Positions 26,177 to 41,582 of a stretch of 64,000 nucleotides of DNA are shown one piece after another (the first letter of the stretch is position 1; every line of letters starts with the position of its first letter). The translations under genes were made by a program, and so were the position numbers. The stretch lies in the sequence record NC_015287.1; one strand, 5' to 3'. The notes beneath the pieces are model-generated. The model was given only the letters and a program-made list of their open reading frames with translations. It was not told the DNA's origin and did no database searches.

Positions 26177-29100
26177 TTGACAGTATTTGTCTACGACAAT
26201 ACGAAGATAGATCAATTCACTACGTTCCAAGGCGGTGATATCACCGTGGGATCTAGTGAAAATATTGACTATGGCGATATTGTAGACAATGTAGAACCCG
26301 AAAGAGACGAGAATTTTTTCTTTGTAAACGACTGGGGACTTATCACTGCTACAGCAGATGTACTCCCATTCGGACCTATCAATGTAGTAGATGGAAGAGA
26401 TGCACTGGGTAGATCTAGATCTCAGTGGATTCCAGAGAACGCAAATACTGTACTGTTTGATGTAAACGATACTGCCCTAGAGAAGGCAGTAACGCCTTGG
26501 ATTGGTTCTGGTACAATTCAAGAGATCGGTTCTGGTCTCGAAAGGATTGTCATACCAGACCTCGGAGCGGCAGGGGCTGTCATCTTCATCCCATCTGGGA
26601 CAGCAGAAGAATCTATATCTAGAGGAAATTATGATGGTGCTGGTGCGATTGCCAAGTCAGGGCTGTCTGCAACCGACCTAGACCAAGTTTATCCTTATGT
26701 TGGTAGTGGTGATATCACCCTCAGTGGTACTACTACAACACCTTATAATGAAGCGTATCTCCCTGTAATTAAAAATGCCTTTAGAGTTAAAGGTGGAGAT
26801 AATCGACTATTTGACGTTGAGAAAGTTATATACAACTACGCCAGAAGTGTATCTGACGTATTCGAGAAAGAAGATAACGGTACAATTACAGTTAGAGAAG
26901 GTGCATCCTTCGATAATCTCAATGTCACATTTGACGAGGTTATCACAGATCCTCTTGCGAAGGAGAGATCATTCTCTGACGAAGATCAGGTAGAATTTGA
27001 AAGCTACGGAAATATATTAGATACGCCTACATCTGCTGAAGATTACGGTGTCCTAGAACAACAATTACAAGGCGGAATATTCTTTGACGAATATCAGGCA
27101 ACCTTTGTCAAGGGCAACGATGCCATTGTCAGAGGATACGAAGGTCTTGGTACGTTCAAGAAAGAAGGTGCTGCAGACGAAGATCGTTTCTTTGCATACT
27201 CTGGATCTGGTACAGCAACATTCTCTGGAGAGAACTTCTTCAGTCAGGCTCCACAAAGCACAATCTTCGGTGTCGGTGATAAGATTACTGCATCTGGTAG
27301 TGCAGATGAGGCGTTCGTCCCTGCAACTGTTGATAACACTGTTCTCTTCGGTATCTCTGGAGATGGTGCAGAGTCTAGAAATATACTACCAACTACAAGA
27401 AAGGCTCTACTTAGACCTTCTGGTTCTGTATCTGGTATCGCTATTGTTACTGGTAGTGGAGACAAATCCAATACAGTTCTCTTCAATACTTCTGGTGCGG
27501 CAACAGATGTTGTACTTGTCAAGGACTACGAGAATACAAATCTATTCGATATCTCTGGAGGGATGCAACAGGGAGTTCCTGTTTACACTCCTTCTTGGTT
27601 CTCTGCAACTGGAGAGTCTGCAACAGAAGAATACGATTGGGGTCTTATCACTGCCACTCCAACTCAACTATCGGAAGATTGGGGACCAATCAATACAAAC
27701 GACGAGACAATACCCAAGGTTGCAGAGAACTGGGGATTCCTTCTCGGAGAGTTCAACTACGTTCAAGTTGGCGGTCAACACTATCCAAACAGAGATACAT
27801 TCTCTGTTGGAGAATCCAGTCTTATTGTTCAGACTGCTGGAACAACAGGTGTTGCAACGTTCCTACTTTCCGAAGATCTCGATATCGCAGCTGCGATTCA
27901 ATACGAATCTTCTGGTATTACTGGTATTGCTACCTACAAGGCTGGCATCAACATCTTCGGTGCAAACTGGTTCAGTCAGGCTCCTCAACACACAGTCTTC
28001 GGTGAAGAAGGTGCAATCACCATTGGTATCTCTACTGCTAATGAGTCGATCACTCCATTCATTCCAGAGGGATCTGGTTCACTCTTCACTATTGGTGGTG
28101 CGGCAGAATCCAGCACCAAGGCATACTTGGTTGGAGATTACCAGTTTATTTCTGGTGCTGCGAACGTCAACTTCGCTCCACATATCACTGGTGTTGGTAC
28201 TGGAACGTTCAGTCAAGGAAGAGAACCTTATCAGACTTACGCTCGTAAGATCAATATTCCTGATGATGAGTTCGGTGGAACCATCTCTCTTACTGGTAAT
28301 ACCATCTTTGAGAAGAATACAGATTCTTACAATGAGTCTTCTATTCTCTTCGGTACAGAGAATGAAGATTATGGATCAATCTCTGTTGAGGATGTTGGTC
28401 GTGGATTCTCACTTTCATCTCTTGGAATCGGACTTACATCCGTTGAATCTCTCGATGCTGGAGATATTACCTTTGATAATTCACAACAAACTGGTCTCAC
28501 ATATGACGAGGCAGTTGGTGGTCCTGGCGTTCTTCCATCGTTCGATAAGAACCAACAGTACAACGTCAGATTTGATTCCAATGTTGTTGCCGAGGATCGT
28601 GGTATTCTCGGAATCAGTTCTGTTGGTGGTCGTCCTTACACCAGACTGTATCCTTCCGATACTGGATTCGATCAACAGGAAATCAACAACGGATACGAAG
28701 ATGCTGGATTCATTACAGATCCAGCACCAAGGGAATCTCAGTTCCCATTCGGAAAGATTGTATTCCCAACAATCCCTGCCAAGTTTACTCAGTTCATCCC
28801 AAGTTGGATTGGTTCTGGTACACTCAACGTATCTGGTACTTCCATCGAGAGAGTTGCTGTTGCAAGTAGCACAACATCTCTATTCGACTTTGTTAGTGGT
28901 GCCGATGAGAGATTCATCGCTCAGACTCCAGAAGGAACAGTTCTGTTCGATATTTCTGGTACTGCAAACGAGAGTGTCACCAAAGACTTTGTTGGTTCTG
29001 GTTCTATTACTCTCGAAAGTGGAGTTGGAATCACTACTTACAGAAGGATTCTCGACATCAAGGGTGTTGGTTCTGCAACCTTCTCTGGTTCTGGTGTTAT

Positions 29101-30835
29101 CAGATCCAGTTTCGATCCACCAGAAGGAACTTACCTACACATCTTTGGAGACGGATACTCAGACTTCAAGGTTTCCTTTGCTACTCAGTCTCAGAAAGCA
29201 ACGTTACGTCTGGTTGGAGAACTTACTCACCCAGATATCGACTTCACACCTCATTATGGTATCGATCGGAACATTGGTATCGAGACAGGCATGTTCCTCT
29301 TGCCTGGTGGTGGCCTCAACGAAGACGGAACAGGTCCAGGCATTGTTACCACAAGGTTCTTACCTAAGTACCCTGCAACTGGTCGAATCACCATTGATGG
29401 TAAGGCAATCGGTCGTACCAACGCTCCTATTCTTACTGATGGTACAATCTACATTCTTGGTATTGGTACTGAGGGTAACGGTCAGATTGGCGATGACGGA
29501 ATCGGTGATCTTAATGGTGTTGAATTTGGTGCAAAAGAAAGATTCGTTCCAGCTACAGAGTTTGGTGCTGGATCTCTCCTATTCGACTTCCAGACAACTG
29601 GTGCAGAAGCAAGACCAGTCAAGGTCTTTGGTTACTATGGAGACGACAAAGATCCTGGCACATCTGGACAAATCACCATACGTCAGGAAGGTGGTATTCT
29701 CACAATCGAGAGAACTGTCGTACCAGAAATCGGATCTGGTACATTCACTTACAGTGGTGCTGGTCAAGGCGAGGCTACAACATCTGTCGAAATTGGTTCT
29801 GGTTCTCTATTCGCAATCGGCGGTATTGCAGAGTCTACAACTGCTGCAGAACTTGTCGCTGGAACCTCCATATTCAATGGAACCGCAGAAGAATCCTTCT
29901 CTGCTCAGACCCCAGAAGATACTGCAACAATTACACTATCTGGAACAGGAGTTGCTCAAAGAAGATTCGAGCCTGTTGGTTCTGGAACTCTTACACTCAG
30001 CAACGATCAAAGAGTCGTTACTGGTATCATACTTTCTCCAACAGGTTCTGGTACATTCAGTATTCTTGGTGGTGCTGCGGAGGCAACAGTCGAACCATCT
30101 GCTGCAAGAGCAATTCTTACAGATATCACAGGTGTTGCAGAAACAAGATACTTCCAAGTATTCCAAGACTTTGTTCCATCTGGTACATTCACATTATCTG
30201 GAGAACTTACACATCCAGATATCGACTTCACACCAGCGTACACTGGATCTGGAATTACTACAATCTCTGGATCTGCCGACGAGGTGGATCTTGTCAGAGA
30301 GATTGGTGTTGGTATTGCAACCTTCTCTGGTGCAGCGGTTGTCAGAATCACAGCAGACGATCTGGAAGGAACAGTCCTCTTCGATACAAAAGGCGCTTCT
30401 GCTCTCACCGCACTCAATCAAGTTTACGGATACTACGGAGACGACAGAGATCCAGGCACATCTGGTATTACTACAATCTCTGGTGTTGGTATTACAAAAC
30501 CAATACAAGTCTTTGGCTACTACGGAGACGACAAAGATCCTGGCACATCGGGTGGATTTACATTCTCCAATACTCCTCTCGTACACCCATTTGTCGATTA
30601 CACACCTTCGATTGGTATTGGTGTTGCAGTCCTTTACCAGACAAGTGGAACAGCTGTCGAATCCTTCACCTTCGCCAACTACGAGACTCAAGGAAGATTC
30701 AAAGGACTTGCTGGATCTAAAGAATCTCTCGCTCGTGCAACTTACGTTGGAATTGGTCAGATTAATACCTTCGGAGCTGGTCAAACAGAATACGCCGTTA
30801 TCGAAGAAGGTAGAACTTATGTTGTCATAATCTAA
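26177..30835 (+). CDS. Large acidic Gly/Thr/Ser-rich repeat protein, probable virion/fibre-associated
   Basis: TTG start with GGGGGA SD-like sequence just upstream; 1552-aa ORF with normal phage codon pattern; internal repeats GYYGDD[KR]DPGTSG x3 and GELTHPDIDFTP x2. Confidence 0.8.
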   Translation: MTVFVYDNTKIDQFTTFQGGDITVGSSENIDYGDIVDNVEPERDENFFFVNDWGLITATADVLPFGPINVVDGRDALGRSRSQWIPENANTVLFDVNDTALEKAVTPWIGSGTIQEIGSGLERIVIPDLGAAGAVIFIPSGTAEESISRGNYDGAGAIAKSGLSATDLDQVYPYVGSGDITLSGTTTTPYNEAYLPVIKNAFRVKGGDNRLFDVEKVIYNYARSVSDVFEKEDNGTITVREGASFDNLNVTFDEVITDPLAKERSFSDEDQVEFESYGNILDTPTSAEDYGVLEQQLQGGIFFDEYQATFVKGNDAIVRGYEGLGTFKKEGAADEDRFFAYSGSGTATFSGENFFSQAPQSTIFGVGDKITASGSADEAFVPATVDNTVLFGISGDGAESRNILPTTRKALLRPSGSVSGIAIVTGSGDKSNTVLFNTSGAATDVVLVKDYENTNLFDISGGMQQGVPVYTPSWFSATGESATEEYDWGLITATPTQLSEDWGPINTNDETIPKVAENWGFLLGEFNYVQVGGQHYPNRDTFSVGESSLIVQTAGTTGVATFLLSEDLDIAAAIQYESSGITGIATYKAGINIFGANWFSQAPQHTVFGEEGAITIGISTANESITPFIPEGSGSLFTIGGAAESSTKAYLVGDYQFISGAANVNFAPHITGVGTGTFSQGREPYQTYARKINIPDDEFGGTISLTGNTIFEKNTDSYNESSILFGTENEDYGSISVEDVGRGFSLSSLGIGLTSVESLDAGDITFDNSQQTGLTYDEAVGGPGVLPSFDKNQQYNVRFDSNVVAEDRGILGISSVGGRPYTRLYPSDTGFDQQEINNGYEDAGFITDPAPRESQFPFGKIVFPTIPAKFTQFIPSWIGSGTLNVSGTSIERVAVASSTTSLFDFVSGADERFIAQTPEGTVLFDISGTANESVTKDFVGSGSITLESGVGITTYRRILDIKGVGSATFSGSGVIRSSFDPPEGTYLHIFGDGYSDFKVSFATQSQKATLRLVGELTHPDIDFTPHYGIDRNIGIETGMFLLPGGGLNEDGTGPGIVTTRFLPKYPATGRITIDGKAIGRTNAPILTDGTIYILGIGTEGNGQIGDDGIGDLNGVEFGAKERFVPATEFGAGSLLFDFQTTGAEARPVKVFGYYGDDKDPGTSGQITIRQEGGILTIERTVVPEIGSGTFTYSGAGQGEATTSVEIGSGSLFAIGGIAESTTAAELVAGTSIFNGTAEESFSAQTPEDTATITLSGTGVAQRRFEPVGSGTLTLSNDQRVVTGIILSPTGSGTFSILGGAAEATVEPSAARAILTDITGVAETRYFQVFQDFVPSGTFTLSGELTHPDIDFTPAYTGSGITTISGSADEVDLVREIGVGIATFSGAAVVRITADDLEGTVLFDTKGASALTALNQVYGYYGDDRDPGTSGITTISGVGITKPIQVFGYYGDDKDPGTSGGFTFSNTPLVHPFVDYTPSIGIGVAVLYQTSGTAVESFTFANYETQGRFKGLAGSKESLARATYVGIGQINTFGAGQTEYAVIEEGRTYVVII
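27084..30830 (+). CDS. Nested +1-frame ORF (1248 aa, Leu/Val/Ser/Gln-rich), unknown function
   Basis: Frame is stop-free from 27057 to 30827; all other same-strand shadow ORFs in the window are under 150 aa; host NTA codons are always followed by C/T here. Expression unproven. Confidence 0.5.
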   Translation: MTNIRQPLSRATMPLSEDTKVLVRSRKKVLQTKIVSLHTLDLVQQHSLERTSSVRLHKAQSSVSVIRLLHLVVQMRRSSLQLLITLFSSVSLEMVQSLEIYYQLQERLYLDLLVLYLVSLLLLVVETNPIQFSSILLVRQQMLYLSRTTRIQIYSISLEGCNREFLFTLLLGSLQLESLQQKNTIGVLSLPLQLNYRKIGDQSIQTTRQYPRLQRTGDSFSESSTTFKLAVNTIQTEIHSLLENPVLLFRLLEQQVLQRSYFPKISISQLRFNTNLLVLLVLLPTRLASTSSVQTGSVRLLNTQSSVKKVQSPLVSLLLMSRSLHSFQRDLVHSSLLVVRQNPAPRHTWLEITSLFLVLRTSTSLHISLVLVLERSVKEENLIRLTLVRSIFLMMSSVEPSLLLVIPSLRRIQILTMSLLFSSVQRMKIMDQSLLRMLVVDSHFHLLESDLHPLNLSMLEILPLIIHNKLVSHMTRQLVVLAFFHRSIRTNSTTSDLIPMLLPRIVVFSESVLLVVVLTPDCILPILDSINRKSTTDTKMLDSLQIQHQGNLSSHSERLYSQQSLPSLLSSSQVGLVLVHSTYLVLPSRELLLQVAQHLYSTLLVVPMRDSSLRLQKEQFCSIFLVLQTRVSPKTLLVLVLLLSKVELESLLTEGFSTSRVLVLQPSLVLVLSDPVSIHQKELTYTSLETDTQTSRFPLLLSLRKQRYVWLENLLTQISTSHLIMVSIGTLVSRQACSSCLVVASTKTEQVQALLPQGSYLSTLQLVESPLMVRQSVVPTLLFLLMVQSTFLVLVLRVTVRLAMTESVILMVLNLVQKKDSFQLQSLVLDLSYSTSRQLVQKQDQSRSLVTMETTKILAHLDKSPYVRKVVFSQSRELSYQKSDLVHSLTVVLVKARLQHLSKLVLVLYSQSAVLQSLQLLQNLSLEPPYSMEPQKNPSLLRPQKILQQLHYLEQELLKEDSSLLVLELLHSATIKESLLVSYFLQQVLVHSVFLVVLRRQQSNHLLQEQFLQISQVLQKQDTSKYSKTLFHLVHSHYLENLHIQISTSHQRTLDLELLQSLDLPTRWILSERLVLVLQPSLVQRLSESQQTIWKEQSSSIQKALLLSPHSIKFTDTTETTEIQAHLVLLQSLVLVLQNQYKSLATTETTKILAHRVDLHSPILLSYTHLSITHLRLVLVLQSFTRQVEQLSNPSPSPTTRLKEDSKDLLDLKNLSLVQLTLELVRLIPSELVKQNTPLSKKVELMLS
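29228..30552 (+). repeat. Dispersed DNA-level repeats in the 1552-aa gene
   Basis: ggagacgaca[a/g]agatcc[t/a]ggcacatc in the motifs starting near 29630, 30428 and 30515; ca[c/t]ccagatatcgacttcacacc at 29228 and 30212. Confidence 0.8.
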
Positions 30836-30839
30836 ATCC

Positions 30840-30847
30840 TATAAATA
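30840..30847 (+). promoter_or_regulatory. Late promoter TATAAATA
   Basis: Exact consensus, intergenic. Confidence 0.8.
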
Positions 30848-30880: not shown

Positions 30881-31339
30881 ATGACCAAGCAGGTTCAATT
30901 TAGAAAAGGAACTACAGCTGAACACTTCAACTTTACTGGAGCTCTTGCAGAGATAACAGTAGATACTGACAAGAATACGGCGGTTGTTCACGACGGATCA
31001 ACTCCTGGCGGATTTGAACTTGCAAGAGCAAGATGGACATTTGTATCTGGAAACTATACTTTGGCAACAAACCAAAAGTACACAGTTGATTCGCAAAATA
31101 GTCCTTCTGGATTCGACTTGGTAATGCCAACTCCTCGAGCGGTTGGTGACTGGGTATGGATTGAAGACTTTGCTAATTTCTTTAGTATCCATCCTATCAA
31201 CGTCACATCACAATACAGTTTTGAAAACGGACATTTAGTTAGAGAATCTTCACCTTTCATCATGGACGTTTCGGGTGCGTCAGTGACTTTTATTTGGAAT
31301 GGTTCCCTTTGGAAAGTATTCAACAATAGGGCTAGTTAA
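30881..31339 (+). CDS. Small fibre-associated protein (Mtd N-terminal-like motif plus gp9/10-like C-terminal domain)
   Basis: QFRKGTTAEH...GALAEITVDTDKNTAVVHDGSTPGG, followed by an MPTPRAVGDWVWIED...FIWNGSLWKV domain. Confidence 0.7.
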   Translation: MTKQVQFRKGTTAEHFNFTGALAEITVDTDKNTAVVHDGSTPGGFELARARWTFVSGNYTLATNQKYTVDSQNSPSGFDLVMPTPRAVGDWVWIEDFANFFSIHPINVTSQYSFENGHLVRESSPFIMDVSGASVTFIWNGSLWKVFNNRAS

Positions 31340-31341
31340 CA

Positions 31342-31746
31342 ATGGCACTTACGCTAAGTAATTCTATTTCTGGACAATTTGACCCTTCCGAATCGTCGGG
31401 TTTTTTCGTGTATGCACTCAGGAGAGATGCAGAAGGCATGCTGATGTTCTCCAAAGTTAGTGCTGCTTCAACAGAATTAGGAGAATTCTATCGTAACGAT
31501 GGAACTGCTATACCAGAATTCGGTGATGGTTTAGATTATGGTACATACGATGTTGGTGTTGGTAAAACATCAGTTATTCGTAATGATATTGCGACTGTTA
31601 AAAAATTCGTAGATGATCCGAATGATAAATACCAACAGATTCGCTTTGATCGAAGAAACTTATACTATTACATAGACGATGATGGCTTTTTCGTTATAAG
31701 ATTTAATGGTCCCGACTATGCTTATAACAGCATCGGACCTAAGTAA
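31342..31746 (+). CDS. Conserved hypothetical protein
   Basis: Clean 134-aa ORF 2 nt after the previous stop; DKYQQIRFDRRNLYYYIDDDGFFVIR motif. Confidence 0.7.
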   Translation: MALTLSNSISGQFDPSESSGFFVYALRRDAEGMLMFSKVSAASTELGEFYRNDGTAIPEFGDGLDYGTYDVGVGKTSVIRNDIATVKKFVDDPNDKYQQIRFDRRNLYYYIDDDGFFVIRFNGPDYAYNSIGPK

Positions 31747-31783: not shown

Positions 31784-34700
31784 ATGGCTGAGTTTAGACT
31801 TGGAAGAGTAAAATTCAACTGGACAGGTGACTGGACAACATCCAAAGCCTATTTGATTGACGATATCGCCAAGTTTGGTGGTAACACTTATGTGGCAATC
31901 GAGAACCACACGTCAACAGCAAGTGTCAGTGACTTTTACGCTAACGACCTTTCCAAATGGAACATCCATATTGAAGGTCTAGAACAAAAAGGACAATGGG
32001 CTACTGGAGTCTACTATCGTATTAACGACTTAGTAAAATTCGGTAACGTTGTTTATAGAGTTACAACTGCTCACACATCAGAAGGAACTTTCATCGATAA
32101 GACGAAAGTTACTGAGTATGTAAAAGGATTTCAAAACGAAGGTGAGTGGGATGGCAATGTAGAGTATCAATCAGGTGACGTTGTAAATTACAACGGTTCA
32201 TCTTATGTTGCGTTAACCACATCTCTTGCTGGATTCCAACCTCCTCAGTATTTGGGTGTTTCCACAGATCCAAATGCTAAGTGGACTATCTTATCTGATG
32301 GTCTTGCTGGTGCGGCTTCAACATACATTGAAGGTACTTACTACAGAGGTGACCTTATTCAGTATGGTGGTAACATCTATCGTCATAAATTAGGTATCAC
32401 AACCAACGTTTCTCCTTTACAGGTTGGTTTAGGATCTATTCAACCACAATCTTTCACTGGTACAGAAGTTTGGGATCTTCTGGTTAAGGGATTTGATTTC
32501 AAAGGCGGTTTCTCCACGACCTTTAACTATCATCCAGGCCACGTTGCAAGATACGGTTCAGACTCTTACATCTCTATTGGTTCTTCTCACAAGAATGTTA
32601 TTCCTACCGCTGGTATCGGAACTTTCTGGGAAGTTCTTGCATCTGGAGATTCCTCTGCTGCTCTTAACACCAAGGGTGACTTACTCAGTTACAACTCTGG
32701 TAATGTAAGAATCGGTATTGGTTCTACAGGTTATGCACTTGCAGTCCAGTCAAATGGAATGCCAGGCTACGAGATTGTAGGTAACCAAACAAGAATTTAC
32801 TACGTTGACTCCGAAGACGGATTAGACGTAAACAACGGTCTTGCACCTAACTTGGCGTTTAAGACTATTAAAAAGGCTTGCGAAGCTGCTCGTCCTAAAA
32901 CAAACATCACCAATATGGTGTATACCGCTTCCACTGGTGTGGCAACGGTTACTGCGCCTGGTCACGGTCTGTTAAACACTGGTACGTTCGTTCAGTTACA
33001 AGATATTCAGTTTGAGTGTCTATCTGGAGGTAACGTATTCAACGTTCTGGGTATGACCTATAACAAGGCAGTTGGTCTTGCAACGATTACTGCTATTGGT
33101 CTTGGTGCTGCTCCCGAAGTTGGAATTGGTGCAACTGTTAGAATCAGAAACTTGAGTGTTCAGTATCAAGGTTCTGCACAGTTTGCTCATACATTCCAAA
33201 CCGCAACAGAAGACGCTATCCAGTCTGGTGGTGACTATGTTCACACATTCAACAGTTGTGCTCCAAACGGAGTGACAGTTGTTGGTGGATCCAGTATCAC
33301 TCCAACAAGTGCTACATATGATCCTTCAAATGGTAACTTCACTATGACTATCACAGGTCATAGTTTATCAACTTCTGACAGTGTTACCATCGCTGATAAC
33401 GCATTTACGTTCACCTGTACGATGAACAACAATGCAAGTCAGAAGACATATCCTAGACCTGGCAAAGACCCTGCACAAGGACAACAGTTAGCAATTACAG
33501 GTACAACAACTGATACAATTACAGTTAACGTTGGACCTTCTCCAATCGTCAACCATCAACCAACTGCGGTTTCTTATAACCAAGCAACTGGTGACATGGT
33601 TTGTACAATCGGACCACACACATTAACAGTTGGTACATCTGTTAAGTTGGCTACTGATGGTATGGTATTCCGTTGTTCAATGGACGGATACACAACCGAT
33701 CACTCTTATCCTCGTCAAGTTGCTGGAGATGGTAACCCTGACCCTGCATACAACACAGCTCTTAACATTACTGCTGTTACAACCAACACAATTACAATCA
33801 ACGTTGGTACTGCGTCTGATGATCAGACAATCACTGGTAAGTTCCCTGCTGTACATACTCAAGGTACTTACGAATTCCTTGTACAGGCTGTACCCGACTC
33901 CAACTCTATTACTTTAAACGTTGGTGTTTCTACTACCGATTACCTCTATGTTTCTGGTGGTACTGCGTTCGTTGGTTTAACAACAACCAAGTATCCCGAC
34001 AAGGTTGCTAAGTCTTACTACGAGGTTCTTGAAGTTACTGATGTTGACAACTTTAAGTGTAACGTTGGTATCTCCACAATCGATCACACATACGTTGAAG
34101 GTGGTTTAGTTACAGACTTGACCCCTGCTATCTTGAAACTGTCTGCGTCTCAGTTCTACGAACAGTTACCAGTTACAGTTCCTCCTTTCACTTCGATTGT
34201 TGGTAACGCACTTAGAGGTTCACAGGTTCTTCCTAAGGCTGGAACATCTGATGACTCTTCAACTCCTAACAACAGGAGTCACATGTTCAAGATGTCTGAT
34301 GCAACAACTATTCAGGCAATCTCCATGAAAGGAATGGAAGGATTCTACTATGATCCTAACGCTCCTTTAGAGTTAGATAACTCTAACTTAAGAACTGGTA
34401 TCGGTACAACCGCTGCTGGTGTGTTCATCTCCTTGAACCCAGATTCACCTATCGATAACAAGTCACCTTATGTTAAGGACTGTACTTGTTTCTCCGACCC
34501 TGCAACTGAGAGTGGCAGATTCGGTGGTGGTGGTGTTGGTGTATTCATCGATGGTGGTGTACACGACACAGGTGCAAAATCAATGGTGTTCGATGCGTTT
34601 ACGCACGTTGCATCTGATGGTGCTGGTTACATTCTTGATAAGGGTGCAATCGCTGAAATCGTTTCCTGTTTCACATACTACGCTAAGTGGGGTTACTACT

Positions 34701-36217
34701 CAGGTGGTGGATCAAGAATCAGGGGTGTTGGCGGAAACAACTCTTACGGAGACTACGGTGTTATCTCATCTGGTTTCTCAACTGATGAAGTTCCCAGAAC
34801 TGCAAAGGTCTTTGGTGACATGATGACAGTTCAAGGAACAACCAAAGGCGGTACAGTTTCTATCGGTGCTACCATGTTCGGTCAGACATCTAAGGCAACT
34901 GCATGGATGTTGAATGATCAGATCTCCGCTGATAAGATTTACTTCAAGTATCAAAGTGGATACGGTAATGCTGGTATCGGTACTACTGGATTCGTAGATG
35001 GAGAAATCGTCTGGTTCGGTAATGGTGCTGAGAATAGTTCTGGTGTGGGTTCAATCACAGTCGGAGCTGCCGCATCTTCCACAACTGGACAGAAAGGAAC
35101 AATTCTAGAGGTTGACCAAACATCTGGAACACTTCTAATCGGTGATGCTATCGGATTCCAGACAACCGCTTACGGTGCAGACGATAGATTCTACATCATC
35201 AACACAATCACGAATGTTGCCGCCGCGGCCACATACTATGAGTGGCAGGCTGGAAACGGTGCAAGTCAACAAGTTGTCTTCAACAACCGTGCAACTCTGA
35301 CAATCTCTCCTGAGAAATCAAGAGGAACATGGGATACTAGAAACTCTGGTTCCACATCTGACATTGAAATCAGAACACTGTTCTCACAGGCAAGACTAAC
35401 AGGACACGACTTCCTCGCAGTTGGTACTGGTAACAAGACACAGACTGGATATCCAAACGTCAACTTGGCGAACGTTATCCAAGGTCAGGAAACTAACGTG
35501 TTCGGACCTGGTAAGGTGTTCTTCGTATCTACTGACCAAGGTGGTAACTTCCGAGTTGGAGACTTCTTCTCCGTTGACCAGTTGACTGGTCGTGCAACAT
35601 TGGATGCTTCCGCGTTCAACTTGTCTGGTTTGACAGAATTGAGACTGGGTGCTATCGGTGGTCAGGTCGGTGAGGCAATCAACGAGTTCTCCTCTGATGA
35701 GACACTTGCTGGTAACTCAAACACTGCATGTCCTACAGAATTTGCAGTTAAGGGATTCTTAACTCGCGGTTCAATGGGTATCAAGGCAATGACACCTCCT
35801 GTTGGTACAACTGCTCAAAGACCTGGCGGCGTTGACGATGAGTTCAACACTGGTGCGTTAAGATTCAACACTACCTTGGGTGCTCTTGAGTACTACAACG
35901 GTACAACATGGATTCAGCCTGGTGTTAAGACATATAGTACTGTTTCTTCAAGTTTCAGTGCTACTTCTGGAGTCACATACTTTGTGAACACAGGTGGTGG
36001 TCAGGTAACTGCTACACTCCCTGCATCTCCTGACTTAGGTGCTGAGATTACATTCATGGACGTTGCTAAGACCTTCGACTCAAACAACTTGGTTGTTTCC
36101 AGAAACGGTAGACCAATCCAAGGTGACAATGCTAACCTAACTGTTTCCACAGAAGGTGCTGCATTTACCCTCGTTTACTCTGGTTCCACATACGGTTGGA
36201 GAATCTTCTCCATCTAA
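31784..36217 (+). CDS. Modular tail fibre (N-terminal W...Y..DD.V..GG..Y repeats, YPR repeats, probable beta-helix, gp9/10-like C-terminal domain)
   Basis: GGAG SD; MAEFRLGRVKFNWTGDW start; IYYVDSEDGLDVNNGLAPNLAFKTIKKA; C-terminal LPASPDLGAEITFMD...RNGRPIQG...LVYSGSTYGW. Confidence 0.8.
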   Translation: MAEFRLGRVKFNWTGDWTTSKAYLIDDIAKFGGNTYVAIENHTSTASVSDFYANDLSKWNIHIEGLEQKGQWATGVYYRINDLVKFGNVVYRVTTAHTSEGTFIDKTKVTEYVKGFQNEGEWDGNVEYQSGDVVNYNGSSYVALTTSLAGFQPPQYLGVSTDPNAKWTILSDGLAGAASTYIEGTYYRGDLIQYGGNIYRHKLGITTNVSPLQVGLGSIQPQSFTGTEVWDLLVKGFDFKGGFSTTFNYHPGHVARYGSDSYISIGSSHKNVIPTAGIGTFWEVLASGDSSAALNTKGDLLSYNSGNVRIGIGSTGYALAVQSNGMPGYEIVGNQTRIYYVDSEDGLDVNNGLAPNLAFKTIKKACEAARPKTNITNMVYTASTGVATVTAPGHGLLNTGTFVQLQDIQFECLSGGNVFNVLGMTYNKAVGLATITAIGLGAAPEVGIGATVRIRNLSVQYQGSAQFAHTFQTATEDAIQSGGDYVHTFNSCAPNGVTVVGGSSITPTSATYDPSNGNFTMTITGHSLSTSDSVTIADNAFTFTCTMNNNASQKTYPRPGKDPAQGQQLAITGTTTDTITVNVGPSPIVNHQPTAVSYNQATGDMVCTIGPHTLTVGTSVKLATDGMVFRCSMDGYTTDHSYPRQVAGDGNPDPAYNTALNITAVTTNTITINVGTASDDQTITGKFPAVHTQGTYEFLVQAVPDSNSITLNVGVSTTDYLYVSGGTAFVGLTTTKYPDKVAKSYYEVLEVTDVDNFKCNVGISTIDHTYVEGGLVTDLTPAILKLSASQFYEQLPVTVPPFTSIVGNALRGSQVLPKAGTSDDSSTPNNRSHMFKMSDATTIQAISMKGMEGFYYDPNAPLELDNSNLRTGIGTTAAGVFISLNPDSPIDNKSPYVKDCTCFSDPATESGRFGGGGVGVFIDGGVHDTGAKSMVFDAFTHVASDGAGYILDKGAIAEIVSCFTYYAKWGYYSGGGSRIRGVGGNNSYGDYGVISSGFSTDEVPRTAKVFGDMMTVQGTTKGGTVSIGATMFGQTSKATAWMLNDQISADKIYFKYQSGYGNAGIGTTGFVDGEIVWFGNGAENSSGVGSITVGAAASSTTGQKGTILEVDQTSGTLLIGDAIGFQTTAYGADDRFYIINTITNVAAAATYYEWQAGNGASQQVVFNNRATLTISPEKSRGTWDTRNSGSTSDIEIRTLFSQARLTGHDFLAVGTGNKTQTGYPNVNLANVIQGQETNVFGPGKVFFVSTDQGGNFRVGDFFSVDQLTGRATLDASAFNLSGLTELRLGAIGGQVGEAINEFSSDETLAGNSNTACPTEFAVKGFLTRGSMGIKAMTPPVGTTAQRPGGVDDEFNTGALRFNTTLGALEYYNGTTWIQPGVKTYSTVSSSFSATSGVTYFVNTGGGQVTATLPASPDLGAEITFMDVAKTFDSNNLVVSRNGRPIQGDNANLTVSTEGAAFTLVYSGSTYGWRIFSI

Positions 36218-36268: not shown

Positions 36269-37054
36269 ATGGCCAACTATAGATCATATCGAAAAGTAAG
36301 ATCAGACCAACTAACTGCTGGTACTATTGGTATCAATAAGTTAGTGTCGGGTGTGACTCCAGATTATTGCGTCAAGATGTTTCATGGACATCCTTGCTAT
36401 TGCACACCTGGCTGTTGTTGTTTGTGGACTGTACCATCGGGAGTAGGTAAACTAACTATCGAACTCTGGGGTGCTGGAGGAAACGGACATGGACATTGTA
36501 CATGTAACAGATGTCAACACTATCAAGCTGCTGCTGGGGGAACATACAATACAAAAACCATCGCGACAACGCCTGGTTGTCAGTATCGTGTATGTGCTGG
36601 TGGAGTTTACAGATGTTGTTCTAGAGAATGTAATGGATGTCAAGGATGTTCTTCATACGTTAACGGTCACAACTTAAGTAACTTCTGTGCTCTTGGTGGT
36701 GCAAGAGGTTGTGCAAACCCAGACTGGTCTGTCAGATGTACATCTAGAAACTACTGTTGTGTATCGCCTGGAACATGGGGTGGAGACTTTGCAATGGCTC
36801 CTCACCAAAAAGGTTGGTCAGGTCACTGGAACTGTCACTGTACTGGTGCGGTTGCAAACACAATGTCATCAGGTGCTCCATTCTTAACATCTGAAGGTGT
36901 TGAGACTATGTTGGAACAGTGCTGGTCACGTTGCGGTTGCTGGACTGCTCCTTATGCGTCTGGTGGACAAGGTGCAATGACTACATACTGTGGTCGTTGT
37001 TGTGGACAGGGCGGTCAAGGCGGCTCTGGTGTTGTAAGAATCACTTACGTCTAG
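36269..37054 (+). CDS. Cys/Gly-rich fibre-tip/adhesin-like protein, paralog 1
   Basis: WTVPSGV..IELWGAGGNG...GG.GG.G.V.ITY glycine-rich fibre domain; 29 Cys in 261 aa (hand count). Confidence 0.8.
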   Translation: MANYRSYRKVRSDQLTAGTIGINKLVSGVTPDYCVKMFHGHPCYCTPGCCCLWTVPSGVGKLTIELWGAGGNGHGHCTCNRCQHYQAAAGGTYNTKTIATTPGCQYRVCAGGVYRCCSRECNGCQGCSSYVNGHNLSNFCALGGARGCANPDWSVRCTSRNYCCVSPGTWGGDFAMAPHQKGWSGHWNCHCTGAVANTMSSGAPFLTSEGVETMLEQCWSRCGCWTAPYASGGQGAMTTYCGRCCGQGGQGGSGVVRITYV

Positions 37055-37068
37055 GAATTTAAACAGAA

Positions 37069-37863
37069 ATGGCAAGTTATTCATCATACAAAAAGATTAA
37101 TGGAGATCAGTTAGAGGATAATACCCTCAACGCTAGTAGTTTTAGTGGTTCTCCAAACTGTACCTACGGCGTAAAATGGGTATTCGGTATCATGTGTCGT
37201 TGTTCGCCTGGTTGCTGCTGCAACTGGACAGTTCCTTCGGGAGTGGGCAACATGTGGATTCAGGCCTGGGGTGCTGGAGGAAATGGTACTGGTGCATGTT
37301 CATGTAACAGATGTCAACACTATCAATCTGGTGGTGGAGGATACTACAACTCCAAGATGATTCAAACCAACAGTAATTGTTCATATACTGTATGTGCTGC
37401 TGGAGTTTACAGATGTCTCTCTAGAGAATGTTATGGTTGCGTAGGTTGTTCATCCTATGTAAATGGACATAACTTATCAAACTTCTGCGCTATTGGTGGA
37501 TGTAGAGGTAATGCCAACCCAAGTTGGAGTACTTCTTGTAACTCTCTGAATACATGTTGTAGACAGCCTGGAAACAACGGAGGAGACTTCGGAATTGGTA
37601 ACCACGGTTCTATCTGGTCTGCATCTAGACACGATACTTACAGAGGTTGGTGTCACTGTTACCACTACGGTCAGAGACCTACTTCTGCACCGTTGATTGG
37701 TACACAAGTTACTCAGTCTATTAGAGAATGTTGGATTCGTTGTGGTTGCTGGATCGTACCTTATGGTCACGGTGGACAGAGTGCTATGACTACATATTGT
37801 GGTAGATGTTGCGGTCAGGGTGGTACTGGCGGTGGCGGACTCGTCAAAATTACATACTTCTAA
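37069..37863 (+). CDS. Cys/Gly-rich fibre-tip/adhesin-like protein, paralog 2
   Basis: Aligns end to end with its neighbours; 28 Cys in 264 aa (hand count). Confidence 0.8.
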   Translation: MASYSSYKKINGDQLEDNTLNASSFSGSPNCTYGVKWVFGIMCRCSPGCCCNWTVPSGVGNMWIQAWGAGGNGTGACSCNRCQHYQSGGGGYYNSKMIQTNSNCSYTVCAAGVYRCLSRECYGCVGCSSYVNGHNLSNFCAIGGCRGNANPSWSTSCNSLNTCCRQPGNNGGDFGIGNHGSIWSASRHDTYRGWCHCYHYGQRPTSAPLIGTQVTQSIRECWIRCGCWIVPYGHGGQSAMTTYCGRCCGQGGTGGGGLVKITYF

Positions 37864-37873
37864 GGGAAAGTAA

Positions 37874-38662
37874 ATGGCTTCTTATTCAAGTTATAAAAAA
37901 GTCTCAAATGACAGAATCATTGATGCTTCGATCACTTCATCGAAGGTTCAAGCTGGTTCATTCTCAAACTGGTGTGTAAAATGGGTCTATGGTCATCCAT
38001 GTTACTGTACACCTGGCTGCTGTTGCAACTGGACTGTTCCTACTGGAGTGACAAGAATCACTTGGGAAATCTGGGGTGCTGGTGGTAACGGACACGGTGC
38101 ATGTTCATGTAACAGATGTCAAAACTGGCACGGTGCTGGTGGTGGATACTATAATACAAGAACTATCTCCACTACTGCTGGATGTCAATATACTGTATGT
38201 GCTGCTGGTGTTTACAGATGTTGTTCTAGAGAGTGTACAGGGTGTTGCGGATGTAACTCCTATGTAAATGGATATAACCTCTCTAACTTCTGTGCCTTAG
38301 GTGGTGTCAGAGGTTGTGCAACTGGTGACTGGTCATCAAACTGTTATTCACAGTTCCATACTTGTTGTATGCAACCTGGCGCCCACGGTGGAGAGTTTGG
38401 AATGGGTAACCACGGTGGTAACTCATACAGACCTGACGGATTCAACTGTCACTGTTTCTATAACGAAGGATTACCAACAGGTGCTCCATTCATCGGAACT
38501 CTTGGTGTTTCTTACGGACAAAGACAGTGTTGGATGCGTTGCGGTTGCTGGACAGTTCCCTATGGACACGGAGGACAAGGTGCGAACAGTAACTACTGTG
38601 GAAGATGCTGTGGACAAGGCGGACAAGGTGGATCAGGACTCGTTAAAATCACCTACGTCTAA
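37874..38662 (+). CDS. Cys/Gly-rich fibre-tip/adhesin-like protein, paralog 3
   Basis: Aligns end to end with its neighbours; 30 Cys in 262 aa (hand count). Confidence 0.8.
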   Translation: MASYSSYKKVSNDRIIDASITSSKVQAGSFSNWCVKWVYGHPCYCTPGCCCNWTVPTGVTRITWEIWGAGGNGHGACSCNRCQNWHGAGGGYYNTRTISTTAGCQYTVCAAGVYRCCSRECTGCCGCNSYVNGYNLSNFCALGGVRGCATGDWSSNCYSQFHTCCMQPGAHGGEFGMGNHGGNSYRPDGFNCHCFYNEGLPTGAPFIGTLGVSYGQRQCWMRCGCWTVPYGHGGQGANSNYCGRCCGQGGQGGSGLVKITYV

Positions 38663-38742
38663 GATTCTTTGCAGACATTGTAAGAGAACTGCTACAAATA
38701 AAATACGTTGTTTAGGGATGTGCGTTGCAGATTCCGACTACT

Positions 38743-38768
38743 AGGGGGTTTATAACCCTCTTTTTTTT
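38743..38768 (+). terminator. Rho-independent terminator
   Basis: AGGGGGTT-TAT-AACCCTCT stem followed by a T run. Confidence 0.7.
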
Positions 38769-38775
38769 ATAAATA
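38768..38775 (+). promoter_or_regulatory. Late promoter TATAAATA
   Basis: Exact consensus overlapping the end of the terminator T-tract. Confidence 0.8.
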
Positions 38776-38807
38776 GTCCCGAAGGAGTAAACCCGAAGAA
38801 ATCCAAA

Positions 38808-39611
38808 ATGGCAACAAAGATTATCGAACATCAGTGGAAGTTAAATCTTCCCAATGCTTTCCTTACAGACCACTCTATGTCTGATGGAAACCAAAGAGAC
38901 CAAACTTATGATGGTCCCGACAAAATTTATCTGCAAATTAATGCAGAAGGAAAAGAGGTATATGGACCTCTCACAGAAGATGACATCGCAGATGGTCGTC
39001 CAAAACCCCTAGATGTTGTACAGTGGTATGAAGTGGACTGTGCTAGATCTGATTTACACACTCTTATCTGTCAGTTAAGAGGACCTGTTGTCAATGAGAA
39101 AGAAGAAGATAGAGGTGCTGGTACAGATACAAACCATCCTGGCTCTCCAGAGGTGGATGGAACTATCTATCCTCAATTTACATATTCTTCAACTATCTTC
39201 CCTGATGACATCTATAACTGGGATACTATCAGAGTTGCAAATCCTGGCACTGCTGGACCTGATGACATCACTATCGGTACATTCACACCTAGAGAAAAGT
39301 TAAACGGTGTTGATGAGGACAAGACATGGGATCATGTTAGAAAACATAGAGACAGTGTTCTTGCTAATACTGATGGTCAGATTGCAGAAGACATGCCTGA
39401 TGCACTTAAGCAACAGTGGAAAGATTATCGTCAGTCATTAAGAGATCTTCCTAATAAGATGATCGCTGCTGGAGTTCATCCTAACTTCGCTGACTTGATG
39501 TTCCCCTTTGAGCCTGGATTCCAAGATCCTCCTCATCAAGGAGACCCTGATGCAGAAAGTGGACAAGCATGGGAACCCCCCATCTTCTATGTAAGAAACT
39601 TTTATATATAA
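38808..39611 (+). CDS. Tail fibre assembly chaperone-like protein
   Basis: C-terminal WDHVRKHRDSVLANTD...QQWKDYRQSLRDLP is the phage tail assembly chaperone motif (W..vR..RD.lL..tD...W..YRQ.LRDlP). Confidence 0.75.
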   Translation: MATKIIEHQWKLNLPNAFLTDHSMSDGNQRDQTYDGPDKIYLQINAEGKEVYGPLTEDDIADGRPKPLDVVQWYEVDCARSDLHTLICQLRGPVVNEKEEDRGAGTDTNHPGSPEVDGTIYPQFTYSSTIFPDDIYNWDTIRVANPGTAGPDDITIGTFTPREKLNGVDEDKTWDHVRKHRDSVLANTDGQIAEDMPDALKQQWKDYRQSLRDLPNKMIAAGVHPNFADLMFPFEPGFQDPPHQGDPDAESGQAWEPPIFYVRNFYI

Positions 39612-39622
39612 AATAATTCATC

Positions 39623-39652
39623 AAGATCCTCCTAATAAGAGGATCTTTTTTA
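39623..39652 (+). terminator. Rho-independent terminator
   Basis: Perfect 9-bp inverted repeat AAGATCCTC-CTAATAA-GAGGATCTT followed by T's. Confidence 0.8.
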
Positions 39653-39656
39653 TTAC

Positions 39657-40316
39657 ATGTTTGAAGTAAATCCTGTCGAAATTACCGAAATAAAAAGATG
39701 TTACGACTACGATAGAATGAGTGACATTGGATATAAATGGAGGAAAGTATTTGTTATAGATGACTTCTACAAGAATCCAGATGAAGTTAGAGACTACGCT
39801 TTGTCATGTGAAAGGACAAATGACAAAGAACATTGTGGCGGTCTCATAGGAACAAGAGTTGTTGAAGATAGACCAGACATGGTTGATAATTTGAAACCAG
39901 TTTTCAAAGAACTCTGCCAACATCCAGAGTGGACAAATCTACAATTTAGTGAGGGAATGTTTGACTACAGATGGGACAGTCAAAAGTTCTGGGTCAATCA
40001 TACAACCAATGAAGATATAAATGAAAGATTTACTAAGACTGTTTATTGTTTTACCCACCATAGAGATAGAGATTCTAGTTGGGCTGCTCTGGTTTATCTG
40101 AACAAAGATGAGGAATGTGACGGTGGAACAGATTTTTACAAATACAGAGAAGACCATGCTTATGGGGATTACGACATAAGAAAAGACATAACCTTTACAT
40201 GTCCAATGAAATATAATAGAATGGTAATGTATGAAGCAAGTTGCACTCATGGTGCGACCTTAAATCGCACAATGTTTAAAGAATATCCTCGTCTGGCACA
40301 GGTATTTTTTATGTGA
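39657..40316 (+). CDS. DUF6445-like / 2OG-Fe(II) oxygenase-fold protein
   Basis: IDDFYKNPDEVR, HRD, WAALVYLN, GGTDFY, MKYNRMVMY...HG...RLAQVFF. Confidence 0.7.
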   Translation: MFEVNPVEITEIKRCYDYDRMSDIGYKWRKVFVIDDFYKNPDEVRDYALSCERTNDKEHCGGLIGTRVVEDRPDMVDNLKPVFKELCQHPEWTNLQFSEGMFDYRWDSQKFWVNHTTNEDINERFTKTVYCFTHHRDRDSSWAALVYLNKDEECDGGTDFYKYREDHAYGDYDIRKDITFTCPMKYNRMVMYEASCTHGATLNRTMFKEYPRLAQVFFM

Positions 40317-40334
40317 CTATATACTATAGGAATT

Positions 40335-41582
40335 ATGAGAACTATGAGATCAAAAGCATTCTTCGTCAATGGTGGGGCAGGGAGAGTAATAAGTTCAATA
40401 CCAGCATTTGAAAAATATGCAGAAACCCATGATGATTTTGTCATCGTGTGTGAAGGAGGTACTGATTTCTTCAAAGGACATCCTACATTAGACGATAAGG
40501 TCTACGACCACTGGCATAAAAGAGTATTCCAAGAACATATTAAACACAGGGATTGCGAGAGTCCAGAACCATACAGAGTATGGCATTACTACAATCAAAA
40601 GTGCAATCTAGCACAAGCATACGATATGGAAATCAATGGGTTAGAAGAACCCAGAGAACTTCCTAAGCCAACAATTCATCTCAATAAGTCAGAGGTTATT
40701 GCTGCTTATAATGTTGTTGAAGAAATTAAATCTGTTACTAAGAAAGATAAAGTAATTGTAGTTCAACCATTTGGTAGATCTGTTGAACAGATGGGAGAGT
40801 TTATTGCAGATCCAACTTCTAGAAGTATGTCTCTCACAGGAGTTGTAGATATCATCAACGCTCTTAAGAAAGATTATGCAGTGGTTGTGATGAGTGAACT
40901 TCATTTCCCAGTTGAAGAGAATGAAGAAAAATATCCTATTGCTAGACCTCAAATTTCTGACATGAGAGTTTGGGCTGGTGTGATTGAGATTGCTGATCAC
41001 TTCTTAGGATGTGACAGTATGGGTCAACACATTGCAAGAGCATTTGATAAGACTGCAACTGTTGTAATTGGATCTACATACCCAGAGAACATTAGTTATC
41101 CAGGCCATAAGGACTTTGATATTATTGATGTGGGAGATGGTCGTAGAGAGTATGCTCCTATTAGAATCGCAATGGATGAAAGAGTAGATCGTTTCAATGA
41201 TGAAGCGATGGAACTAAGTAAAAAACAGATTGATGAAGTCGTTGCATCTTGTAGAAAAAGATTAGGTAAACCAAAAGCATATACTGGTACTTTTGTTCCT
41301 CCACAACAACAGCAGGGACAATCTTGTTCACCAAGTCAACCTCAACAACCAGCTATTGCATCACCAGTGCAATCACAGTTGAATAATTTACCTACTTCAA
41401 ATTGGACTCCTTCTGCGACACAAACAACTAATCCTATGATGAGTGGTGCTCCTAAACCTACCTTTACTATGGAACCACCAAAACCAAAAAAACCAAAGAA
41501 CAAGAAAGGTTTCCAATCTGAAATTAAAAATCTGTTAAAATCCGATAAAGATAACGCAATTACTATAGAAAAGAAGAATTGA
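40335..41582 (+). CDS. Glycosyltransferase, GT9 (heptosyltransferase)-like, with Gln/Pro-rich C-terminal tail
   Basis: VIVVQPFG and DHFLGCDSMGQHIARAFDKTATVVIGST resemble the GT9 DSG..H.A.A...P.V..fG.T signature. The start may be 40344. Confidence 0.6.
   Translation: MRTMRSKAFFVNGGAGRVISSIPAFEKYAETHDDFVIVCEGGTDFFKGHPTLDDKVYDHWHKRVFQEHIKHRDCESPEPYRVWHYYNQKCNLAQAYDMEINGLEEPRELPKPTIHLNKSEVIAAYNVVEEIKSVTKKDKVIVVQPFGRSVEQMGEFIADPTSRSMSLTGVVDIINALKKDYAVVVMSELHFPVEENEEKYPIARPQISDMRVWAGVIEIADHFLGCDSMGQHIARAFDKTATVVIGSTYPENISYPGHKDFDIIDVGDGRREYAPIRIAMDERVDRFNDEAMELSKKQIDEVVASCRKRLGKPKAYTGTFVPPQQQQGQSCSPSQPQQPAIASPVQSQLNNLPTSNWTPSATQTTNPMMSGAPKPTFTMEPPKPKKPKNKKGFQSEIKNLLKSDKDNAITIEKKN

Follow-up and report, generated by a model that had tools for sequence, protein, structure and literature searches.

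The genes SSSM7_114, SSSM7_115, and SSSM7_116 of Synechococcus phage S-SSM7, a T4-like cyanomyovirus of the Kyanoviridae, lie in tandem downstream of a long tail-fibre gene, and their products are annotated in the database as hypothetical proteins. We analyzed them in a stretch of 64,000 nucleotides from record NC_015287.1, referred to here as the window. All positions are window coordinates, and addition of 62000 gives the coordinate in the NC_015287 record. The three products, called paralogs 1, 2, and 3, share the predicted fold of a cyanophage fibre head, a highly conserved set of Cys residues, and a fixed occurrence as a triad, and we infer that they may assemble into one heterotrimeric head. 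Residue numbers marked p3 are those of paralog 3 (SSSM7_116). The immediate locus is composed as follows.

31784 to 36217, + strand: SSSM7_113, long tail-fibre protein of 1477 amino acids; phrog_9851 ("tail fiber protein"), with N-terminal CBM_5_12 repeats in three stretches
36269 to 37054, + strand: SSSM7_114 (paralog 1), predicted Cys-rich TNF-like plus glycine-rich head protein; 261 amino acids, 29 Cys; Gly_rich_2 at 24.9 bits (cutoff, 24.3); phrog_4205 at an E value of 1e-68
37069 to 37863, + strand: SSSM7_115 (paralog 2); 264 amino acids, 28 Cys; phrog_4205 at an E value of 1e-63; no Pfam match
37874 to 38662, + strand: SSSM7_116 (paralog 3), the paralog modelled; 262 amino acids, 30 Cys; Gly_rich_2 at 26.4 bits
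38743 to 38769, + strand: intrinsic-terminator-like hairpin (38743 to 38761) plus T run, putative end of the fibre-paralog unit; stem of 8 pairs, 4 of them GC pairs
38768 to 38775, + strand: second late-promoter-like motif (position of the 8-mer), 33 nucleotides upstream of the chaperone gene
38808 to 39611, + strand: SSSM7_118, candidate tail-fibre-assembly-type chaperone of 267 amino acids; Phage_tail_APC; beta-rich N-terminal part and helical C-terminal part

The original prediction, read from the letters of the window alone, had described three tandem paralogs of 261, 264, and 262 residues that follow a fibre gene and precede a terminator and a gene with a chaperone motif. Three + strand open reading frames (ORFs) were confirmed at exactly the coordinates listed for the three paralogs, and the order of fibre gene, paralogs, hairpin with T run, and Phage_tail_APC gene also held. 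RefSeq lists a further coding sequence, SSSM7_117 (38415 to 38744, + strand), an annotated hypothetical gene that is read in a different frame from paralog 3 and overlaps its 3' end. Across 82 related loci, the alternative-frame ORF at this site ranges from 0 to 209 amino acids; therefore, SSSM7_117 is probably not a gene.

The other two paralogs share 57% and 62% identity with paralog 1. Cys makes up 11.1, 10.6, and 11.5% of paralogs 1, 2, and 3, respectively, and Gly makes up 16.1 to 17.9%. For comparison, the 35 window ORFs of at least 150 amino acids have a median Cys content of 0.74%, the next highest value after the paralogs is 3.7%, and the fibre protein SSSM7_113 contains 0.7%. Twenty-six Cys columns are identical in all three paralogs, and every aligned Cys motif quoted in the original prediction was found, including the Cys-to-Leu change in paralog 2. 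Residues 1 to 10 are conserved in all three proteins and are followed by a variable linker (residues 11 to 30). The conserved core, spanning residues 31 to 150 and 221 to 262, holds most of the Cys clusters. Residues 151 to 170, 181 to 200, and 211 to 220 (p3) are variable and rich in insertions and deletions, and the AlphaFold2 model described below has lower confidence in the same blocks. The stretch between Cys clusters that had been singled out as differing among the paralogs falls in this most variable part of the family, at p3 residues 181 to 200. Two nearly invariant His residues, p3 H180 and H193, adjoin Cys.

All three paralogs matched phrog_4205, a family of unknown function, over their full length (residues 1 to 261/264; E values of 1e-63 to 4e-70). 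The Pfam family Gly_rich_2 (PF21722) was matched marginally by paralogs 1 and 3 and not matched by paralog 2 at an E value of ≤0.1; PF21722 is precomputed for many homologs, though not for all. Searches with the paralogs found nothing in NCBIfam and no PDB sequence below an E value of 0.9. An AlphaFold2 model of paralog 3, based on an input alignment of 44 sequences, had a predicted local distance difference test score (pLDDT) of 78.6 and a predicted template modelling score of 0.77. In this model, 67% of the residues were assigned to neither helix nor strand, as is expected for polyglycine-type segments. When the model was compared with PDB structures using Foldseek, the best match was the Pam3 fibre (7ypx_A; E value of 1.3e-6, probability of 1.0, template modelling [TM] scores of 0.51/0.53), and further matches were chains of the Bxb1 tail tip (9d93; probability of 1.0, TM-scores of 0.37 to 0.47) and a long series of ALK/LTK TG-domain entries (E values of 2e-3 to 1e-2). 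Against BFVD, 205 viral proteins matched at an E value of ≤0.001, most of them named "glycine-rich domain," "tail fiber," or "minor tail" proteins, with proteins of S-CAM3, P-SSM2, and Syn9 included. On the basis of the PDB and viral matches of the model, the fold class is the TNF-like sandwich plus glycine-rich domain of the distal head of the Pam3 fibre, which is in keeping with the glycine-rich fibre-tip scaffold that had been predicted.

The original prediction had also drawn on the gp38 adhesins of T-even phages. The gp38 of Salmonella phage S16 (PDB 6F45) is alike in being about 250 amino acids long and glycine-rich, in having a polyglycine scaffold that bears variable loops, and in the position of its gene behind that of the distal fibre. 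Nonetheless, at the level tested the two are not related: Gly_rich_2 was the only Pfam match at an E value of ≤0.1, no gp38 family match was obtained, the PDB sequence search gave the result stated above, and 6F45 was not among the 50 PDB fold matches listed. Kinship with gp38 was thus rejected, and the likeness is an analogy of role, not of family.

Metagenomes contain 529 full-length homologs of the paralogs, which places the pattern far beyond chance. Among 50%-identity cluster representatives, 394 profile matches were obtained at an E value of ≤0.001, and the carriers are hundreds of viral contigs. Only six homologs were found in cellular genomes, on contigs binned into marine metagenome-assembled genomes (MAGs). 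Two Neomarinimicrobiota MAG contigs of 153 and 335 kb (L167 and L168) gave a partial match of 37% identity to residues 37 to 147, which could be a cellular or prophage glycine-rich-domain protein. An apparent natural fusion of the fibre C terminus to paralog 1 (L162, P0139) was rejected, as it lies on a long-read contig with genes broken into many short ORFs. Another sequence, P0191, looks artefactual, its start being unlike that of the Cys-rich paralog family, and representatives of this kind call for caution. A single-copy relative of 477 amino acids (P0129) carries its own shaft before the Cys-rich head and is followed by a Phage_tail_APC gene.

Copy number and order were determined in 83 S-SSM7-type loci, namely, the window, its duplicate RefSeq record (L001), Sf-FS3, and 80 IMG/VR contigs. 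Exactly three tandem copies were present in all 83, and 193 of the 195 proteins have their closest relative outside their own locus in the matching position. Identity averages 70 to 73% between proteins in the same position and 55 to 59% across positions, while the three copies within a locus are only 50 to 65% identical. Gene conversion has therefore not homogenized the copies, and the triplication is old and ordered. The dN/dS ratios (nonsynonymous to synonymous substitution rates) of all three paralogs were 0.09 to 0.15 in the core and 0.27 to 0.33 in the variable segments, which shows that each of them evolves under purifying selection.

In a distant subfamily known only from uncultured phages, 74 of 75 loci have three copies; the remaining locus is truncated by the end of its contig. 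Counting both divergent subfamilies, 157 of 158 loci carry three copies. The layout in the distant subfamily is a copy, a chaperone-like gene (about 230 amino acids), two further copies, and a longer chaperone-like gene (315 to 496 amino acids), so that each triad (L087 to L151 and others) has two chaperone-type genes. These genes belong to the same module and are flanked by a long CBM_5_12 fibre gene and a carbamoyltransferase gene. A tblastn search of the phage collection with the distant subfamily (E value of ≤0.001) returned no full-length match and only short partial ones to S-SSM7-type phages. In S-CAM3, three Cys-rich genes (10.9, 11.6, and 8.0% Cys) lie 3' of the syntenic fibre gene. 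One-to-one orthology of the copies between the two subfamilies was sought and not found; the triplication may have been single and ancient or repeated.

The original prediction had left a choice between a heterotrimeric tip and three alternative host-range tips. With copy number and order constant across all 83 S-SSM7-type loci and 74 of the 75 distant ones, the heterotrimer is favored, since one would expect the number of alternative host-range tips to differ among loci. A related possibility is that the paralogs are three independent adhesins, each forming its own homotrimer or monomeric cap, as gp38 of T2 and S16 does on gp37, and conferring three receptor specificities on different fibres or particles. 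Adhesins of the gp38 type are encoded after the fibre gene and are near 260 amino acids long, and both the position and the size of the paralogs recall them. Moreover, the paralogs differ most from one another in the loop segments between residues 151 and 220, and the two copies in P-SSM2, together with the single-copy 477-residue relative, indicate that the head can work outside a triad. However, alternative tips would be expected to be gained and lost, whereas three copies in a fixed order are kept in 157 of 158 loci; in addition, the N-terminal 10 residues common to all three proteins fit one shared docking or trimerizing element better than three attachment sites. We therefore regard independent adhesins as rather unlikely. 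In PMC12032242, gp38 is described as monomeric.

Conservation of the Cys residues was evaluated in 195 distinct proteins from 82 independent loci. The proteins contain 25 to 30 Cys each, with 21 Cys columns that are at least 98% conserved and 15 further variable Cys columns. The Cys positions are thus kept in homologs, and their loss there had been named as an outcome that would speak against the predicted role. A wider superfamily set of 109 sequences, nonredundant at 75% identity, has about 8 to 10 near-universal Cys columns (p3 51, 79, 109, 140, 157, 165, 194, and 219, plus 50 and 116); the remaining columns are subfamily specific, and the Cys content of the distant relatives is 6 to 12%. 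The CxxCxxC stretch is conserved in the S-SSM7 subfamily, but across the superfamily C121, C124, and C127 are present in only 68, 49, and 46% of sequences, respectively. The stretch is therefore not conserved at that depth, and an ancestral Fe-S site is unlikely.

We then considered the chemistry of these residues. Proteins with even and odd Cys counts numbered 79 and 116 among the S-SSM7-type proteins, 48 and 85 in the second subfamily, and 39 and 42 among 50%-identity representatives; Cys sums over triads were even and odd in 22 and 46 cases and in 32 and 27 cases. The invariant columns, 21, are odd in number. Variable Cys columns co-occurred in groups, one comprising C34, C117, and C148 (phi coefficients of 0.73 to 0.76) and another comprising C49, C124, C127, C223, and C225 (phi of 0.41 to 0.59); C121 was linked only to C225 (phi of 0.49) and C223 (phi of 0.35). 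The residues that replace Cys include His, Asp, Asn, and Glu, as well as Gly and hydrophobic residues. The lack of an excess of even counts, the odd invariant set, and the co-occurrence in groups and not in pairs argue against a fully paired intramolecular disulfide network. The pattern is compatible with metal sites or with a mixture, a suggestion tempered by the confounding of the signal by shared ancestry.

Two explanations of the Cys set were weighed. In the first, most Cys form disulfides that lock the head in oxic seawater, some of them perhaps linking subunits or joining the head to the fibre. The paralogs are presumably extracellular for most of their existence, and disulfide-bearing glycine-rich polyproline-II bundles exist, such as the snow flea antifreeze protein. 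The six co-occurring columns 49, 121, 124, 127, 223, and 225 could equal three bonds. On the other hand, fibre assembly happens in a reducing cytoplasm, and the parity of the Cys counts and invariant columns, as well as co-occurrence in groups of three to six with no clean pairs, speaks against such bonds. Disulfides between fibre and wedge are documented in the virion of cyanophage Pam3 (PMC9942802). Overall, we consider a mainly disulfide-bonded head possible, at somewhat below an even chance.

In the second explanation, most Cys bind metal, either Zn or, at a subfamily-specific site, Fe or Fe-S, as thiolate clusters that can form in the cell. CxC, CC, and CxxC spacings recall those of metal-thiolate proteins. 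Metal binding leaves Cys parity unconstrained; it also fits the near-invariant H180 and H193 next to Cys, the replacement of Cys by His, Asp, Asn, or Glu in variable columns 104, 148, 223, 242, and 245, and the clique-like co-occurrence of the two groups above. Against it, no metal-binding family was matched in Pfam or NCBIfam, other Cys substitutions are hydrophobic residues or Gly, only about 8 to 10 Cys columns are near-universal in the superfamily, and the co-occurrence is confounded by phylogeny. In addition, we know of no structural relative, Pam3 gp24 and ALK included, that needs metal. Metal coordination by most of the Cys is thus a tentative reading, with the balance tilted against it.

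SSSM7_118, the gene that follows the paralogs, matched Phage_tail_APC (PF16778) with 38.4 bits against a gathering cutoff of 26.6 (residues 176 to 217) and phrog_4912 ("tail fiber assembly") with an E value of 2e-11, which bears out the chaperone motif read in it at the outset. A total of 214 homologs were found at an E value of ≤0.001, and among the 120 listed, nearly all carry a precomputed PF16778 match. By these profile matches, SSSM7_118 is a member of the chaperone family. Its AlphaFold2 model had a pLDDT of 84.9, and its layout, a beta-rich N terminus with helices at residues 174 to 220, agrees with the published description of Pam3 gp25. S-CAM3 gp155 matched SSSM7_118 only weakly (12.9 bits), and P-SSM2 305 did not match it.

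The chaperone gene also bears on the possibility that the paralogs are not virion parts but function solely within the infected cell. They could, for instance, buffer metal or redox state or be assembly factors that are released from the fibre. T4 gp38 offers a precedent, being a chaperone absent from particles according to PMC9608196, and no virion proteomics showing the paralogs was found in the literature. However, the predicted fold is that of the distal fibre heads of solved virion structures, a dedicated chaperone-type gene already follows the paralogs, and the combination of a conserved core with variable loops is characteristic of receptor-binding proteins. A purely intracellular role is accordingly very improbable.

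We also examined the signals around the module. An 8-base motif, which we take to be the T4-type late-promoter consensus, occurs six times in the window, each copy on the + strand and 21 to 43 nucleotides upstream of the start of a + strand ORF; six copies compare with 3.95 expected, and the count is not significant in itself. The remaining features of the module and the copies of the motif are as follows.

30840 to 30847, + strand: late-promoter-like motif (position of the 8-mer) upstream of gene 111, likely start of the fibre-paralog unit
30881 to 31339, + strand: SSSM7_111, small tail protein whose gene opens the module; N-terminal Mtd_N domain (Pfam Mtd_N, 50.3 bits); phrog_9648 ("tail protein")
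31342 to 31746, + strand: SSSM7_112, conserved hypothetical protein (T4-GC 295); phrog_8997
39623 to 39647, + strand: terminator-like hairpin 3' of the chaperone gene; 9-pair stem and T run
4586, 25045, 30840, 38768, 61891, and 63612, + strand: copies of the 8-base late-promoter-like motif, with letters read in the window

From the placement of these signals, genes 111 to 116 likely form one unit that ends at the 38743 hairpin, and gene 118 likely forms a unit of its own that ends at the 39623 hairpin. Synteny of SSSM7_111 is kept in Sf-FS3, S-CAM3, and P-SSM2, and that of SSSM7_112 is kept in P-SSM2 and S-CAM3. SSSM7_120 (T4-GC 302; 40335 to 41582, + strand), a 415-residue protein with a Gln/Pro-rich tail and no family match, is kept at the module end in P-SSM2, S-CAM3, and Sf-FS3.

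Several neighboring features were also recorded. Upstream of the module, positions 26177 to 30835 (+ strand; RefSeq start, 26246) encode a protein of about 1,530 to 1,552 amino acids with zero cysteine and 13% Gly; its translation shows short internal repeats, and it has no Pfam family match. Directly 3' of the chaperone gene lies SSSM7_119 (39657 to 40316, + strand), a DUF6445/2OG-Fe(II)-oxygenase-like protein classified in phrog as "minor coat protein," with 3.7% Cys. Downstream of SSSM7_119 are genes for carbamoyltransferases, a tryptophan halogenase, the heptose pathway, and a cysteine dioxygenase; conceivably, the genes downstream of the chaperone modify fibre proteins or host surface sugars. 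Among the 80 metagenomic contigs (L003 to L082), 51 end 379 to 774 bases upstream of paralog 1, inside the last ~110 to 240 codons of the fibre gene (window positions ~35500 to 35890). Assemblies seem to break where the fibre gene turns variable or repetitive, while the fibre C-terminal part and the triad are conserved. ARAGORN found no tRNA or tmRNA gene in the window (positions 1 to 64000).

Altogether, the reading that we favor, and to which we give an even chance, is a 1:1:1 heterotrimeric fibre head made of the products of genes 114, 115, and 116, braced by Cys, assisted by gp118, and presenting variable loops to the host. In this model, three anciently diverged paralogs would fold as TNF-like beta-sandwich heads whose loops form the glycine-rich domain. 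They appear to share late transcription with the long fibre gene 113 and would co-assemble into one head of pseudo-threefold symmetry, which may cap fibre 113 or make its own short, Pam3-like fibre, held by the conserved first 10 residues and the variable 20-residue linker. The product of the separately promoted gene 118 would assist folding of the head, in the way that gp25 assists gp24 in Pam3. The conserved Cys would brace glycine-rich loops that are poor in hydrophobic core through disulfides, metal-thiolate sites, or both, and p3 segments 151 to 170, 181 to 200, and 211 to 220 may contact the host surface.

Known systems provide partial parallels for such a head. The closest is Pam3 gp24/gp25 (PDB 7ypx and 7yfw), the best structural match and likewise from a cyanophage, with 250 to 280 amino acids, a TNF-like sandwich plus glycine-rich domain, and a trimeric fibre folded by a tail-fibre-assembly (TFA)-type chaperone encoded next to gp24. 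The trimeric chaperone clasps the heads of the gp24 trimer in a 3:3 arrangement (PMC9608196). Unlike S-SSM7, which keeps three diverged paralogs, Pam3 has one gene and a homotrimer; gp24 has a long N-terminal helical shaft, whereas the S-SSM7 paralogs have only about 33 residues before the sandwich; and the glycine-rich domain of gp24 is 39% Gly (PMC9608196), whereas the paralogs are about 11% Cys overall, with a sequence identity of 17%. The tail-tip proteins of mycobacteriophage Bxb1 (9d93; gp33 "brush" and gp29 subdomains) likewise contain glycine-rich bundles and form part of the virion tail tip (PMC13243192), but Bxb1 is a siphophage of an actinobacterium, and the available text of that source reports no Cys-rich character or paralog triad for its tail-tip proteins. 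The ALK/LTK TG extracellular domain has the same fold class by Foldseek but belongs to animal receptor kinases that bind a cytokine, and its TM-scores are low (0.25 to 0.3).

Two further systems resemble the proposed head in assembly. In the head of complement C1q, three paralogous TNF-like domains (A, B, and C chains), whose genes are clustered, make up a heterotrimer. C1q offers an analogy only; unlike the S-SSM7 proteins, it comes from animals, has collagen stalks, and lacks a glycine-rich or Cys-rich domain. In mycobacteriophage Mysterious, three adjacent genes, gp35, gp36, and gp37 (203 to 209 amino acids), form one fibre-like heterotrimer with a beta-sandwich core, as seen by cryo-electron microscopy (PMC13252515). 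The fold and the position, a baseplate accessory ring, are different, and the likeness is one of assembly principle.

A number of observations weigh against the heterotrimeric head. The TM-scores between paralog 3 and Pam3 gp24 are moderate (about 0.5), and the TG domain of ALK/LTK is not known to function as a trimer. P-SSM2 has two Cys-rich copies (10.1% Cys each) and not three, and the S-SSM7-type copies all score best against copy 1 of the distant subfamily, with no one-to-one correspondence. For the chaperone, the best Foldseek match of the SSSM7_118 model in the PDB had an E value of 0.94, the matches were unrelated, and neither Pam3 gp25 nor Mu Tfa was matched; phmmer against PDB sequences gave nothing. 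Finally, virion proteomics for S-SSM7 or any other carrier of the paralog family was not found in the literature. The virion proteomics of Sullivan in 2010 covered S-SM1, S-PM2, and Syn9 only, with gene clusters 1336 to 1338 unique to S-SSM7. The S-SCSM2R paper describes a virion receptor-binding protein with an S-SSM7 homolog.

The TNF-like plus glycine-rich fold and the chaperone family are already known. In contrast, no description was found in the literature of the extreme conserved Cys content, the strict triad, or the wide spread of the module in marine T4-like phages. A more specific proposal is that marine T4-like cyanophages share an obligate three-paralog heterotrimeric receptor-binding head whose scaffold is held by metal-thiolate clusters loaded inside the cell and not by a hydrophobic core or disulfides. 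We regard this combination as improbable; if true, such a head would be to viruses what the C1q head is to animals, and no polyglycine adhesin braced by metal would have preceded it.

The receptor-binding proteins of marine T4-like cyanophages are almost uncharacterized, yet they decide which Synechococcus and Prochlorococcus strains die. The paralog family is abundant, lies in a conserved fibre module, and combines a rare fold with extreme conserved Cys content and a strict three-gene rule. The Cys network raises the question of how a virion protein from a reducing cell gains stability in oxic seawater. If the heterotrimer is real, it would represent a different route to fibre-tip diversification, with three nonequivalent faces on one head, and the triad would serve to mark the host-recognition module in metagenomic sequences.

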